From contig NC_043020.1 of the NCBI RefSeq assembly GCF_006345805.1, positions 27,280,001 through 27,344,000 of the forward strand: a DNA stretch of 64,000 nucleotides, read 5' to 3'. Each line of letters opens with the position of its first letter. Positions within the stretch are counted from its first letter, which is position 1. Made by a program: the position numbers and the translations under genes. Positions 2,418-13,319 of the stretch are shown here, piece after piece. The notes beneath the pieces were generated by a model. The model was not told where the DNA came from. It saw only the letters and a program-made list of their open reading frames with translations, and did no database searches. The stretch is from Octopus sinensis. Lineage: Eukaryota.

Positions 2418-2535
2418 ATCCGAGTCAACTGTGTGAACCCAACAGTTGTGCTTACAGAAATGGGGATCAAATTTTGGACTGATCCCGTCAGAGCTGGACC
2501 TATGTTAGACAGGATTCCATTGAAGAAATTTGCAG
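2418..2535 (+). CDS. DCXR: DCXR exon 6, on the opposite strand to exons 1-5: [39 protein letters not shown]+G
   Basis: Acceptor ttccttttttcag|ATC, donor G|gtttgt. 118 nt, phase 0 in (matches exon 5). Corresponds to IRVNAVNPTVVMT...RIPLGKFA of human DCXR. Confidence 0.92.
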
Positions 2536-3452
2536 GTTTGTTAAAATCTTTTTTTGTTTTTTTAATTTCCTCATTTACTAATTAATCTTTTAAATGATTT
2601 CAGACATTAAACTATGTCCATCTAGATGTCTGTGTGTCATCATCATCATCGTGTAACGTCTGCTTCCTATGCTGGCATCTGTTGGACAGTTCGATGGGAG
2701 CTGGCCAGGCAGAAGGCTGCACCAGGCTTCAGTGTCTGTTTTGGTATGGTTTTTACAGCTTTCATGTCTGTAAAATAACCAACACATTCAGCACTTACGA
2801 AATTATATATATATCATCATCATCATTGTTTAATGTCCGTTTTCCATGCTGGCATTGGTTGGACAATTTGACTGGAGACTGGCAAACCAGATGGCTGCAC
2901 CAGGCTCCAATCTTGATCTGGCAGAGTTTCTACAGCTGGATGCCCTTCCTAACGCCAACCACTCCGAGAGTGTAGTGGGTGCTTTTTACATGTCACTGGT
3001 ACGGGGAGATGCTCTGTGTTTCTTTCAATTGATTTTAAATATATCAAAGAATTTAGTAAAATAACTTAGTTGTCGTTAAGCTATTGTTAGGAATATAAAT
3101 TGTGACTAAGGTTTGGTGGAAGATTTTAATTCAGAACTTATGGAAACAAGACATTTGTACTCAGAGCCGGAGCCAGTTTCAGCCGGGTTGGTACCGAAAG
3201 GGTTCAAGCTGCAAGCTGGCAGAATTGTTAGCCCGTTGAATGAAATGCTTTCACCCATTCCTACGTTCTGAGTTCAAATTCCACCAAGGTTGACTTTACC
3301 TTTCATCTTTTTGGAGTCGATAAATTCAGTACCAGTTGCATACTGGGGATCGATGTAATCGACTAGCCCACCCCCTCCCCCAAACATCAGGCCTTATGCT
3401 TATAATAGAAAGTATTTCTTTTTAACTTTCCTTTCCTTTCTTATATTTTCAG

Positions 3453-3556
3453 AAGTGGAAGATGTTGTGCATTCCATAATATTTCTCCTGAGCGACAAAG
3501 CTAACTCCACAACTGGGTCACTACATATGGTTGACGGTGGAACTCTCTGCTGCTGA
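3453..3556 (+). CDS. DCXR: DCXR exon 7 (terminal): (E)VEDVVHSIIFLLSDKANSTTGSLHMVDGGTLCC-stop
   Basis: Acceptor tatattttcag|AA, TGA at 3554-3556. AATAAA motifs near 3648 and 3717. Exons 1-7 sum to 244 aa. Confidence 0.92.
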
Positions 3557-4222
3557 TAACCAAAATGAGGGAGCCACTATGTGGTTGCTCAGCATGAAAG
3601 AAACAGCAGTCAAATAGCCTTCAAATCCTGCATCGTGTCCTGATGAAAATAAAAAAAAGAAATGTACCATTGGATAATGGATAATGAAGTCCTTAATATA
3701 TACCGTGCCATGTCTGAATAAAAGACAGGATGCTACCACCGCCAGAACTCTTTTAGTTTTGTGTTTCATCAGGGCTGACCTTGGCTAAACAACAATAAAA
3801 TCGACAACCACAGAGCACAAGAAATAATGTGAGTGCTAAAACCCTCAAAACCACTCCTTAGAAACCCTAGAAAAAAAAAAAAAAGCTGAGATATATAAAA
3901 CAATATATTTGATAAGGGAAAATATACAGGCTTCTGATGTTTTAATCATGATTTCAACAGATTCGTGTGAGTTTTTACTGCATGAGCTGAGGGTGCAGTG
4001 CTTGCATGTTCCTGCACAGGGTACAGTTTAGTCTTTTGGGGATGTAGATCAGGATTTGGAATGAGACGATTCGGCGCAGCTCTTTGGAGAGGCTAGAGTA
4101 GAAGACACTTGCCCAAGGTGCCACGCAGTGGGATTGAACCTGAAACAATGTGGTTTGTAAGCAAGCTACTTACCACACAGCCACTCCTATCTCTATGAAA
4201 GCATGAGGTCAAACGAAATACC

Positions 4223-4630
4223 TTACTCTCTCTTTTACTTGTTTCAGTCATTTGACTGCAGCCATGCTGGAGCACCGCCTTTAGTCGAGCAACTCGACCC
4301 CGGGACTTATTCTTTTGTAAGCCCAGTTCTTATTCTTTCGGTCTCTTTTGCCGAACCGCTAAGTAACGGGGACATAAACACACCAGCATTGGTTGTCAAG
4401 CAATGCTAGGGGGACAAACACAGAGACACAAACACACACATATATATATATATATATATATATACATATATACGACAGGCTTCTTTCAGTTTCCGTCTAC
4501 CAAATCCACTCACAAGGCTTTGGTCGGCCCGAGGCTATAGAAGAAGACACTTGCCCAATGTGCCATGCAGTGGGACTGAACCCGGAACCATGTGGTTGGT
4601 AAACAAGCTACTTAGCACACAGCCACTCCT
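4223..4630 (-). mobile_element. Full-length tRNA/CORE-type SINE with internal (TA)n/(TG)n
   Basis: Head GGAGTGGCTGTG...GGTTCAGTCCC, CORE-like TTGGGCAAGTGTCTTCT, tail CCAGCATGGC...TGACTGAAACAAGTAAAAGAG. Confidence 0.88.
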
Positions 4631-4720
4631 CATGGATTTCTTGTTAAAGGTACTGAAACAGAACTGTGTGACCACACAACAAAAATTCCATCTGGTTCTT
4701 GAATCAAAGGACATACTTAC

Positions 4721-4885
4721 ACCGTGAGGGCCCAGCTCAAGGGCCATAGATCTGGTTAAAGCATCCAATGCACCCTTAGTGCAGCAATATACTCCATGAT
4801 TCTTTAATGCCATCCGAGAAACTTCACTGGAAATGTTGACGATGGAGCCATGTCTTTTGTCTGCTAGCATTCCTTTGACAACGAT
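4721..4885 (-). CDS. DCXR: DCXR exon 5: [55 protein letters not shown]
   Basis: Acceptor ttcgttacag|ATC, donor GGT|gtaagt. 165 nt. Contains the catalytic Ser (NISS) and YxxxK (YCCTK). Confidence 0.94.
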
Positions 4886-5281
4886 CTGTAACGAAGTGAA
4901 AATAATTAATTAGTAAACGAGTCAAAAATGGAAATATGTGATCACTTGACTTGCTAGAAATAACAGCCAAGTCTCATTTTTAAACAGACTACTGCTCTGG
5001 TTTTCTAACAGTGTACAGCTTTATTCTTTTTACTCGTTTCAGTCATCTGACTGCGGCCATGCTGGAGCACTGCCTTTTAATCAATCAAAGAAACTGACCC
5101 CAGGACTTATTTTTTGTAAGTCTGGTACTTATTCTACTGGTCTCTTTTGCCGAACTGCTAAGTGAAGGGGATGTAAACACACCAGCATCAGTTGTCAAGT
5201 GATTGCAGGGACACCCCCTCACACACACAAACACAGACCCAAAGACAACACACAACTATATATATATATATATATATATAT

Positions 5282-11329: not shown

Positions 11330-11427
11330 TTCTTCAACTAACGTCTTCAGGTGTTCCTCAGTGCGACTCAGTGCGTAAGTTGTTGCACCACACTTTGAGA
11401 GCATCTTTGCTGTTTCTCGACCGATTC
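11330..11427 (-). CDS. DCXR: DCXR exon 2: (G)IGRETAKMLSKCGATTYALSRTEEHLKTLVEE
   Basis: Acceptor ttttcctctaag|GA, donor GAA|gtaagc. 98 nt, phase 1 in and phase 0 out, matching exons 1 and 3. Confidence 0.93.
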
Positions 11428-11544
11428 CTTAGAGGAAAAAAAAAGAACAAAAATATCAACAATAATTAACAAAAAATGGCAAAAGATTATTTGACACTGA
11501 TGGAGTCATAGTGGTGACCTCGTCTTGGTTGTTAATGTCATAAT

Positions 11545-12250
11545 GTCGACCAAAGCCTTGTGATTAAATTTGGTAGATGGAAACTGTGTGGAAACCTGTT
11601 GTGTGTGTATTTCTTTCTTTTACTTGTTTCAGTCATTTGACTGCGACCATGCTGGAGCACCACCTTTAGTCGAGCAAATCTACCCCAGGACTTATTCTTT
11701 GTAAGCCCAGTACTTATTCTATCAGCCTCTTTTGCCGAACCGCTAAGTGACGGGGACGTAAACACACCAGCATTGGTTGTCAAGCAATGCTAGGGCGAGA
11801 AACACAGACACACAAACATATACACACACATACACACATATACACACACATATACACATATATGACAGGCTTCTTTCAGTTTCCGTCTACCAAATCCACT
11901 CACAAGGCATTGGTCGGCCTGGGGCTATAGCAGAAGACACTTGCCCAAGATACCACGCAGTGTGACTGAACCCGGAACCATGTGGTCGGTAAACAAGCTA
12001 CTTACCACACAGCCACTCCTGCGCCTATATGTGAGTTTGTGTGTGTGTATGGATCTTTTATCTTTTACTTGTTTCAGTCATTGGACTGTGGCCATGCTGG
12101 GGTACTGCTTTCAAGGGTTTCAGCCAAATAGTTCAACCCCCAGTACTTGCTTTTAAAGCCCGGTACTTATTCTATTGGTTCTCTATTGCTGAACTGCAAA
12201 GTCATGGAGGATGCAAACAAACCAACACTGGTTGTTAAGTGGTGAGGAGG
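11545..12250 (-). mobile_element. Cluster of full and partial CORE-type SINE copies in DCXR intron 1
   Basis: Family motifs recur at 11630-12020 and 12060-12250. Confidence 0.8.
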
Positions 12251-12352
12251 ACAACCACAATTACAAAGACAGACAGACAGACAGACACACACACACACAC
12301 ATACATGTAAAGAGCTTCCACACAGTTTCAGGCAAATTTAGGTGATGAGGAT

Positions 12353-12701
12353 AGTCGATTACAACGACCTCAGTGCGTAACTGGTACTTAATTTATCGAC
12401 CCCGAAAGGATGAAAGGCAAAGTCGACCTCGACGGGATTTGAACTCAGAATGTAACGGCAGACGAAATACCTATTTCTTTACTACCCAAAAGGGGCTAAA
12501 CACAGAGGGGACAAATAAGGACAGACAAACGGATTAAGTCGATTATATCGACCCCGGTGCGTAACTGGTACTTAATTTATCGACCCCGAGAGGATGAAAG
12601 GCAAAGTCGACCTCGGCGGACTTTGAACTCAGAACGTAGCGGCAGACGAAATACCGTTAAGCATTTCGCCGGGCGTGCTAACGATTCTGCCAGCTCGCCG
12701 C
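12353..12701 (-). mobile_element. Dimer of the same tRNA-SINE (one GAAATAC|CTATTTC junction)
   Basis: Direct comparison with 35042-36874. Confidence 0.85.
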
Positions 12702-13267
12702 TAAAGTGAAGTTCAAATAAATAGTGGGTGTGTTAAGTGGCAAAAAAACGACCGTCCCCAAATATATAAAGTTTAAATTATATTTGTGCTTTAGTTAAAC
12801 AAACACCATGAGGGCACCGTCGATATAAAAACGTATCGTGGGCCACGGCAGAAAAATAAAATATTGCGCTTCACTTGTATATGTATATATGAGATAATAT
12901 TTGTTACAAGACAAGGAACAAAGAAATATATTAAAATATTAAGAAACATATAAATAAAAAGACAGACTTCATGGTATTAGGAGACCTCGATTTAAAACTA
13001 AGGTAGTATTACTGTTTTTAGTACAACTGAACTAGCGCAAGCCTATCATGAGACATTCGAAGCGTGACTATCACGACAATTATTATTTTTTAGATACAAT
13101 GTATTCTACAAGCCGCTCCATATTTGTAAAGGCAATGGGGCGTGACTTGAGGGAGCTTTATTGGCTATTTCTAGGACGTCCGGCGAGCACGAACAAAGGA
13201 ATCAGCAAAAATTAAATGAAAAACACCCAAATAAAGTTATAAAGAGATTTTTCAGAATAGAAATTAC

Positions 13268-13319
13268 CTCGTCCCGCTCCAGTTACCAAAGCTTTCTGAC
13301 CGTTGAACTTAATTTCCAT
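13268..13319 (-). CDS. DCXR: L-xylulose reductase / dicarbonyl reductase (classical SDR), coding exon 1: MEIKFNGQKALVTGAGR+G
   Basis: Manual translation of the minus strand. ATG at 13319-13317, phase-1 donor G|gtaatt. Begins the SDR TGxxxGIG cofactor motif (TGAGR-GIG). Confidence 0.93.

Follow-up and report, generated by a model that had tools for sequence, protein, structure and literature searches.

A 64-kb stretch of Octopus sinensis DNA (CM016882.1:27,280,001-27,344,000, assembly GCA_006345805.1; hereafter the window) contains seven exons of L-xylulose reductase (DCXR) genes, five on the minus strand and two on the plus strand, with AG and GT at each internal boundary. When joined, these exons show the phases 1, 0, 2, 0, 0, and 1 and form an uninterrupted frame of 735 nt (244 aa and the stop codon), the product of which matches annotated L-xylulose reductases far above chance (E = 2e-156). 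The first-pass annotation of this stretch had listed the same seven exons with their coordinates, GT-AG sites, and phases, all of which were found again at their positions, and had interpreted them as one intact 244-aa DCXR. The frame is indeed open and of this length, but its exons stem from two paralogues: the 244-aa protein of the window is a chimera of exons 1-5 of one gene (gene A) and exons 6-7 of a second gene (gene B). Including the DNA left of the window, the locus very probably consists of two complete, near-identical DCXR paralogues, with gene B situated as a whole and in antisense within intron 5 of gene A, and with the window edge cutting through both.

The halves of the two genes that lie outside the window were identified by tblastn of the protein against the DNA to the left, a check proposed in the first-pass annotation, which settled the question. 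Two loci were returned as encoding the annotated protein P0001 (“L-xylulose reductase-like” of O. vulgaris and O. sinensis, XP_029650570.1 / CAI9739888.1). Locus L001 of O. sinensis is 100% identical to the window over 23,319 bp (L001 position = 23320-p, with p being the window position) and supplies 26.4 kb left of window position 1; locus L002 is its counterpart in O. vulgaris (OX597837.1, assembly GCA_951406725.2). Each locus carries two full seven-exon sets, one per strand, and in O. sinensis the halves outside the window lie at CM016882.1:27,263,617-27,276,910. The features of the two genes are as follows.

Gene A, exon 1: window 13319-13268, minus strand, 52 nt (L001 10001-10052, plus strand); ATG at 13319; 100% identical to P0001 residues 1-18.
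Gene A, exon 2: window 11427-11330, minus strand, 98 nt (L001 11893-11990, plus strand); AG/GT boundaries, phase 1 to 0.
Gene A, exon 3: window 10231-10077, minus strand, 155 nt (L001 13089-13243, plus strand); AG/GT boundaries.
Gene A, exon 4: window 8299-8257, minus strand, 43 nt (L001 15021-15063, plus strand).
Gene A, exon 5: window 4885-4721, minus strand, 165 nt (L001 18435-18599, plus strand); its donor GTAAGT opens intron 5.
Gene A, intron 5: L001 18600-36068, 17.5 kb.
Gene A, proximal stub of intron 5: window 4631-4720, minus strand; retains homology to the 5' end of intron 5 of gene B and of the O. bimaculoides gene.
Gene A, exon 6: L001 36069-36186, plus strand; 12.7 kb left of window position 1.
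Gene A, exon 7: L001 39600-39703, plus strand; 16.3 kb left of window position 1.
Gene B, exon 1: L001 32651-32600, minus strand (plus strand of the window); 9.3 kb left of window position 1.
Gene B, exon 2: L001 30451-30354, minus strand (plus strand of the window).
Gene B, exon 3: L001 29516-29363, minus strand (plus strand of the window).
Gene B, exon 4: L001 28698-28656, minus strand (plus strand of the window).
Gene B, exon 5: L001 26574-26410, minus strand (plus strand of the window); 3.1 kb left of window position 1.
Gene B, distal part of intron 5: window 1-2417, plus strand; the whole intron measures 5.5 kb.
Gene B, exon 6: window 2418-2535, plus strand, 118 nt (L001 20902-20785, minus strand); carries the B-specific residues F190, V195, R196, and G198.
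Gene B, exon 7: window 3453-3556, plus strand, 104 nt, stop codon TGA (L001 19867-19764, minus strand); identical in nucleotides to exon 7 of gene A.
Gene B, 3' untranslated region (UTR) and downstream flank: window 3557-4630, plus strand; inverted copy of the 3' flank of gene A (L001 40759-39704), ending in a short interspersed nuclear element (SINE) of approximately 400 bp.
Left junction of the inverted duplicate: window 4628-4630; 3-nt overlap “AGG” (in L001 sense), 93 nt past the exon 5 donor, at the end of the SINE.

Gene B (L001 32651-19764; 12.9 kb from ATG to stop, seven exons) is contained in intron 5 of gene A on the other strand, and the frame of gene A is intact (735 nt) with canonical AG/GT on both sides of this intron. 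All exon boundaries of both genes are AG/GT. Gene A, composed of exons A1-7, corresponds to P0001, and its 244-aa protein is identical in O. sinensis and O. vulgaris. The proteins of A and B differ at 14 residues (94% identity), and these differences are common to both species. The chimera is 98% identical to P0001 and differs from gene A solely by F190, V195, R196, and G198 of B exon 6 (F190Y, V195I, R196K, and G198A); its frame closes perfectly because A and B are 94% identical with common intron phases. In agreement with the first-pass annotation, no minus-strand match to residues 172-244 was obtained in window 1-4720 (tblastn with human DCXR as query), and window 1-13319 is devoid of N runs. 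The sole N run of the window is a 100-N scaffold gap at 56830-56929, far from DCXR; the assembly is scaffolded, and the DCXR region is free of gaps. Of the explanations offered in the first-pass annotation, the one ranked third, i.e., two interleaved paralogues with their other halves left of the window, is the one borne out by the two exon sets.

The public annotation of both loci contains a 244-aa gene spanning approximately 29.7 kb and, within it on the opposite strand, a second adh_short (DCXR) gene. Both genes are therefore already modelled, and the arrangement is ordinary in kind. In O. vulgaris, exon order, orientation, junction, and paralogue-specific substitutions are the same as in O. 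sinensis, and the O. vulgaris assembly is the product of an independent project, for which Nanopore reads are mentioned (PMC10700109). Among public gene models, the join of A5 to A6 is carried by P0001, and the join of B-type exon 5 to B-type exon 6 by P0121, an annotated O. vulgaris isoform. Judged by the splice sites and frames, each of A and B could be made by ordinary cis-splicing.

A and B both score well above the curated Pfam cut-offs of 27 and 26.6 bits for adh_short and adh_short_C2 (A: 185.7 and 175.2 bits; B: 188.5 and 177.3 bits), and A aligns with human L-xylulose reductase (1PR9) with residues 1-244 on 1-244 (E = 2.4e-85). The cofactor motif TGAGRGIG (of the TGxxxGxG type) as well as the catalytic Ser-Tyr-Lys with Asn are present in A and B, and T13, G14, G16, G18, G20, N107, S136, Y149, and K153 are invariant in A, B, other cephalopods, and fish. 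By these features A and B are classified as short-chain dehydrogenases/reductases of the DCXR subfamily and are predicted L-xylulose reductases. The length of 244 aa and the residues S136, Y149, and K153 are shared with vertebrate DCXR (PDB 1PR9) and mouse lung carbonyl reductase (1CYD), and the seven-exon structure is common across octopods; a difference from these vertebrate relatives is that the octopus gene is duplicated in the O. vulgaris/O. sinensis lineage.

The codons of A and B differ at 16 positions, 14 of which are replacements and 2 synonymous. When polarised with O. bimaculoides, at least seven changes fall on the A lineage and one on the B lineage. Six A-specific residues encoded by exon 5 (E137, V138, R140, M141, C150, and C151) are located next to the catalytic S136 and Y149, and for four of them (E137, V138, C150, and C151) relatives possess Q, A or S, S or C, and S or A or T, respectively, while B keeps the ancestral residues, i.e., the states found in O. 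bimaculoides and Argonauta. This cluster of replacements would be compatible with a shift in the substrates used by A as well as with a relaxation of constraint on A, with numbers too small for a formal test.

We infer that both A and B are expressed and functional. Several observations weigh against the nested layout with two working genes. For both A, with its 17.5-kb intron, and B, expression and splicing rest on the gene models P0001 and P0121, and such models can be partly protein-based or ab initio. An exact look-up of A, B, and both chimeras (A1-5 with B6-7, and B1-5 with A6-7) in a collection of 15 billion proteins returned only A, so that the exact B protein is absent from it. Among proteins spanning the exon 5/6 junction (135-aa query), P0121 was the sole close match from octopus, and no run-assembled transcripts of O. 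vulgaris or O. sinensis were found. In the O. sinensis assembly, one C is missing from a CCC run in B exon 3 (L001 ~29447, 6.1 kb left of the window), which shifts the frame and may represent an assembly indel error or a real frameshift or null allele; the O. vulgaris orthologue of this exon is intact, and the B proteins of the two species differ at the frameshift codon only. Finally, the right-hand edge of the duplicate is narrowed only to L001 33102-35240. A literature search on octopus L-xylulose reductase returned nothing relevant.

Accepting the layout, one of the copies might be non-functional, either B, which would then be a pseudogene in decay, in O. sinensis at least, or A, which would be disabled by the antisense gene in its intron. 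The 1-nt deletion in B exon 3 is in line with this, as is the O. vulgaris annotation, in which the B products are all truncated (178 and 153 aa), and the ratio of 14 replacement to 2 synonymous codons could mean relaxed constraint. However, B is intact in O. vulgaris (244 aa), retains all splice sites, catalytic residues, and ancestral residues, and its deletion in O. sinensis is located in a C-run, a common site of long-read errors; the frame of A is unbroken in the two species, and its annotation is full-length. We consider the loss of one copy unlikely.

An assembly artefact, in which the segment with exons 6-7 would have been misoriented or mis-joined at repeats in a genome that truly contains one collinear gene, is highly improbable. 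The end of a SINE, where the junction is located, is a typical place for mis-joins, gaps exist elsewhere in the assembly, and at least one probable indel error (in B exon 3) is present. Contig misorientation had been ranked first in the first-pass annotation. This does not account for the independently assembled sister species, in which the same two exon sets occur in the same order and orientation with the same 3-nt junction, nor for the 14 residue differences between A and B common to both species; moreover, each strand has a full exon set, with no exon missing or left over. A real, recent or polymorphic inversion that splits one DCXR gene between exons 5 and 6 is even harder to uphold. It would explain the flip of orientation between exon 5 and exon 7 and a breakpoint at a SINE, but an inversion keeps the copy number at one, whereas here every exon occurs twice, once per strand, the block comprises the whole gene plus flanks, and the arrangement is fixed in two species diverged by approximately 2.5 Myr (PMC10700109). 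The breakpoint had been sought in SINEs at window 4085-4630; these repeats are real and the position was right (4628-4630), but it marks the edge of an inverted duplication and not of an inversion.

Mixed-strand trans-splicing of the mod(mdg4) kind, linking exons 1-5 of A with exons 6-7 of B, is scarcely credible and needless as well, since the compatible phases and splice sites and the intact frame of the chimera are expected of any recent paralogue pair, donor and acceptor both have cis partners of the same phase with good splice sites, the annotated isoform of B has the B5-B6 join, and the cis product A is present in the protein collection from which the chimera is absent (weak evidence, because B is absent too). 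The junction read proposed for its detection, CCTCACGGT joined to ATCCGAGTC (window 4721/2418), is the same for A5-A6, B5-B6, and A5-B6 and cannot discriminate between cis and trans, because codons 152-189 are the same in the coding sequences of A and B. Only reads spanning codons 150-151 and 190 together distinguish the products (A: TGC TGC and TAT; B: TCC TCC and TTT). A naive junction-read test on identical paralogue junctions would falsely “confirm” trans-splicing.

Returning to the nested pair, its origin can be placed by comparison with other octopods. DCXR is a single collinear gene in O. bimaculoides (locus L003) and in Argonauta hians (locus L004), where its seven exons span 6.8-7.1 kb and intron 5 measures 0.5-1.1 kb; in O. 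bimaculoides the same ENTH-domain gene is situated downstream of DCXR. The split of O. vulgaris and O. sinensis is dated to approximately 2.5 million years ago (Mya) and that of O. bimaculoides to approximately 34 Mya (PMC10700109). Due to the single copy in the outgroups and the same layout in both sister species, the inverted duplication is placed, on sequence comparison, later than the divergence of O. bimaculoides but earlier than that of O. vulgaris from O. sinensis, i.e., between ~34 and ~2.5 Mya by these dates.

Self-comparison shows the B block to be an inverted copy of the whole gene. At its 3' end the block reaches 1,074 bp past the stop codon, to the end of the SINE; upstream it includes at least 240 bp before the ATG, or approximately 450 bp when compared with O. 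vulgaris (within O. sinensis, homology to the upstream region of A can be followed to L001 32889; against O. vulgaris, it can be followed to ~33102). Beyond, palindromic repeats occur at L001 33369-33917 and 34876-35119, which are also found upstream of A in both orientations. At the left junction, the sequence of A remains homologous to the ancestral intron 5 up to and including L001 18692, and homology to the reverse complement of the A 3' flank starts from 18690; the same 3-nt overlap is present in O. vulgaris (L002 19217-19219). Before O. vulgaris and O. sinensis parted, their common ancestor had thus acquired an inverted gene copy 93 nt downstream of the start of intron 5. Since the left junction is a 3-nt microhomology at a SINE end, the copy may have arisen by a microhomology-mediated template switch or end joining, in which the gene would have been copied backwards before synthesis resumed in intron 5.

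Two other origins were rejected. Recombination between inverted SINEs as a simple origin of the left junction does not agree with an overlap of only 3 nt, and the old SINE fragment of the ancestral intron 5, which begins approximately 70 nt beyond the junction, also counts against it. Histories in which a tandem, head-to-head, or tail-to-tail duplicate was inverted in one step were worked through on paper, and none yields the order A1-5 / B7-B1 / A6-7. The SINE family (approximately 400 bp) is represented by at least 12 copies in the 50 kb of L001 with 85-92% mutual identity. One copy (window 4230-4630) forms the edge of the duplicate, and several others entered A or B after the duplication, e.g., that at L001 35636-36034, shortly before exon 6 of A.

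The distance between A and B varies along the gene in a mosaic (in substitutions per site; orthologue distances refer to O. sinensis versus O. vulgaris):

Exon 4: A versus B 0.006 (O. sinensis); orthologues 0.003 (A) and 0.027 (B).
Exon 5: A versus B 0.08-0.10; orthologues 0.012 (A) and 0.028 (B).
Exon 6: A of O. sinensis versus B 0.06-0.075, comparisons with A of O. vulgaris 0.018-0.024 on fewer sites; orthologues ~0.014 (A and B).
Exon 7 and 3' flank: A versus B 0.015 (O. sinensis) and 0.022 (O. vulgaris); orthologues 0.030 (A) and 0.023 (B).

Exon 7 and the next 263 bp contain a single substitution in 367 positions (window 3453-3819 = L001 19501-19867, versus L001 39600-39966), and around exon 4 of O. 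sinensis the copies are 99.4% identical over 336 bp (window 8002-8337 versus L001 28401-28736). In the 3' flank of B, identity counted from substitutions only is 98.5-99.6% near the stop codon and 94.7% in the SINE part. For the regions of exons 2, 3, and 7, the A-B distance within a species is equal to or lower than the orthologue distance between species, while the regions of exons 5 and 6 are 6-10% diverged between A and B. Because the A-B distance within species at exon 7 and its 3' flank is below the orthologue distance of A, we read this pattern as the mark of ongoing gene conversion between the two inverted copies, which would affect the regions of exons 2, 3, and 4 as well as exon 7 with the 3' UTR, with exons 5 and 6 escaping.

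Further repeats and elements were observed in the window, the first two of them within or next to gene A; scans for tRNAs and Rfam families over the window gave no matches.

Window 7480-8081: tandem repeat of 168 bp in intron 4 of gene A, 3.6 copies, 91% identity.
Window 15733-21100, plus strand, just upstream of gene A: non-LTR (long terminal repeat) retrotransposon resembling a long interspersed nuclear element (LINE), with a low-complexity first open reading frame (ORF1) of 664 aa; its endonuclease/reverse-transcriptase ORF2 is in at least three pieces (17752-19521, 19639-20286, and 20241-21098).
Window 19995-21270 and 21720-23006: direct duplicate of the 3' part of this LINE-like element, ~90% identical.
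Window 26090-26707: (AT)n microsatellite of ~620 bp.
Window 35044-36826: satellite with a 184-bp unit, 9.7 copies, 94% identity; a further 2.5 copies occur 13 kb on, at 49947-50400.
Window 42730-43947, minus strand: ORF of 405 aa with reverse-transcriptase-like motifs, probably a second retroelement fragment.
Window 50787-51386: (CAC)n microsatellite of ~600 bp, the source of the pronounced GC/AT skew at 50-52 kb.

The octopus DCXR pair leaves current views of gene organisation or expression unchanged. It is rather a caution that a frame closing across two strands at the edge of a window can stem from two young paralogues. In addition, it provides a small, datable inverted gene duplication in the intron of its parent, with a junction at a 3-nt microhomology, which is useful for questions of the survival of nested paralogues.

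In comparison with known systems, the locus resembles Drosophila mod(mdg4) in that exons which would form one frame are located on both strands of one locus. The opposite-strand exons of mod(mdg4), however, are without a cis 5' partner, whereas each strand of the octopus locus carries exons 1-7. The arms of sex-chromosome palindromes are inverted segmental duplications kept similar by gene conversion. The DCXR pair likewise consists of two inverted copies, in some segments of which the paralogue distance is lower than the orthologue distance, but it differs from such palindromes by its size of approximately 13 kb, its content of one gene, and a patchy homogenisation from which the regions of exons 5 and 6 escape.

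Antisense nesting within introns is known from Drosophila 2mit, situated in intron 11 of timeless2 (PMC3786989), and from human nested genes (PMC3192792). As in these cases, a whole antisense gene is situated in one intron, the host must be spliced across it, and transcriptional interference is possible. Unlike these cases, in which host and guest are different genes, the octopus guest is a recent inverted copy of its host with 94% protein identity, and thus the host pre-mRNA has long stretches complementary to its own exons. In the primary transcript of A, complementary arms extend over 1.6 kb with 95% identity (L001 18690-20314 versus 39138-40759), and the match is almost perfect over exon 7 and the 263 nt that follow it.

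Drosophila hairpin-RNA (hpRNA) loci derive from inverted duplication of the target gene, and ADAR editing is extensive in octopus. It might be speculated, as a rather improbable extension, that the A pre-mRNA forms a hairpin with the antisense copy and serves as a strong ADAR substrate or as an hpRNA-like source of small RNAs cross-regulating the DCXR copies, with conversion maintaining the complementarity. The octopus locus is similar to hpRNA loci in possessing an inverted gene duplicate in one transcription unit that can fold into long double-stranded RNA, and is distinguished from them by the intact reading frames kept in both copies.

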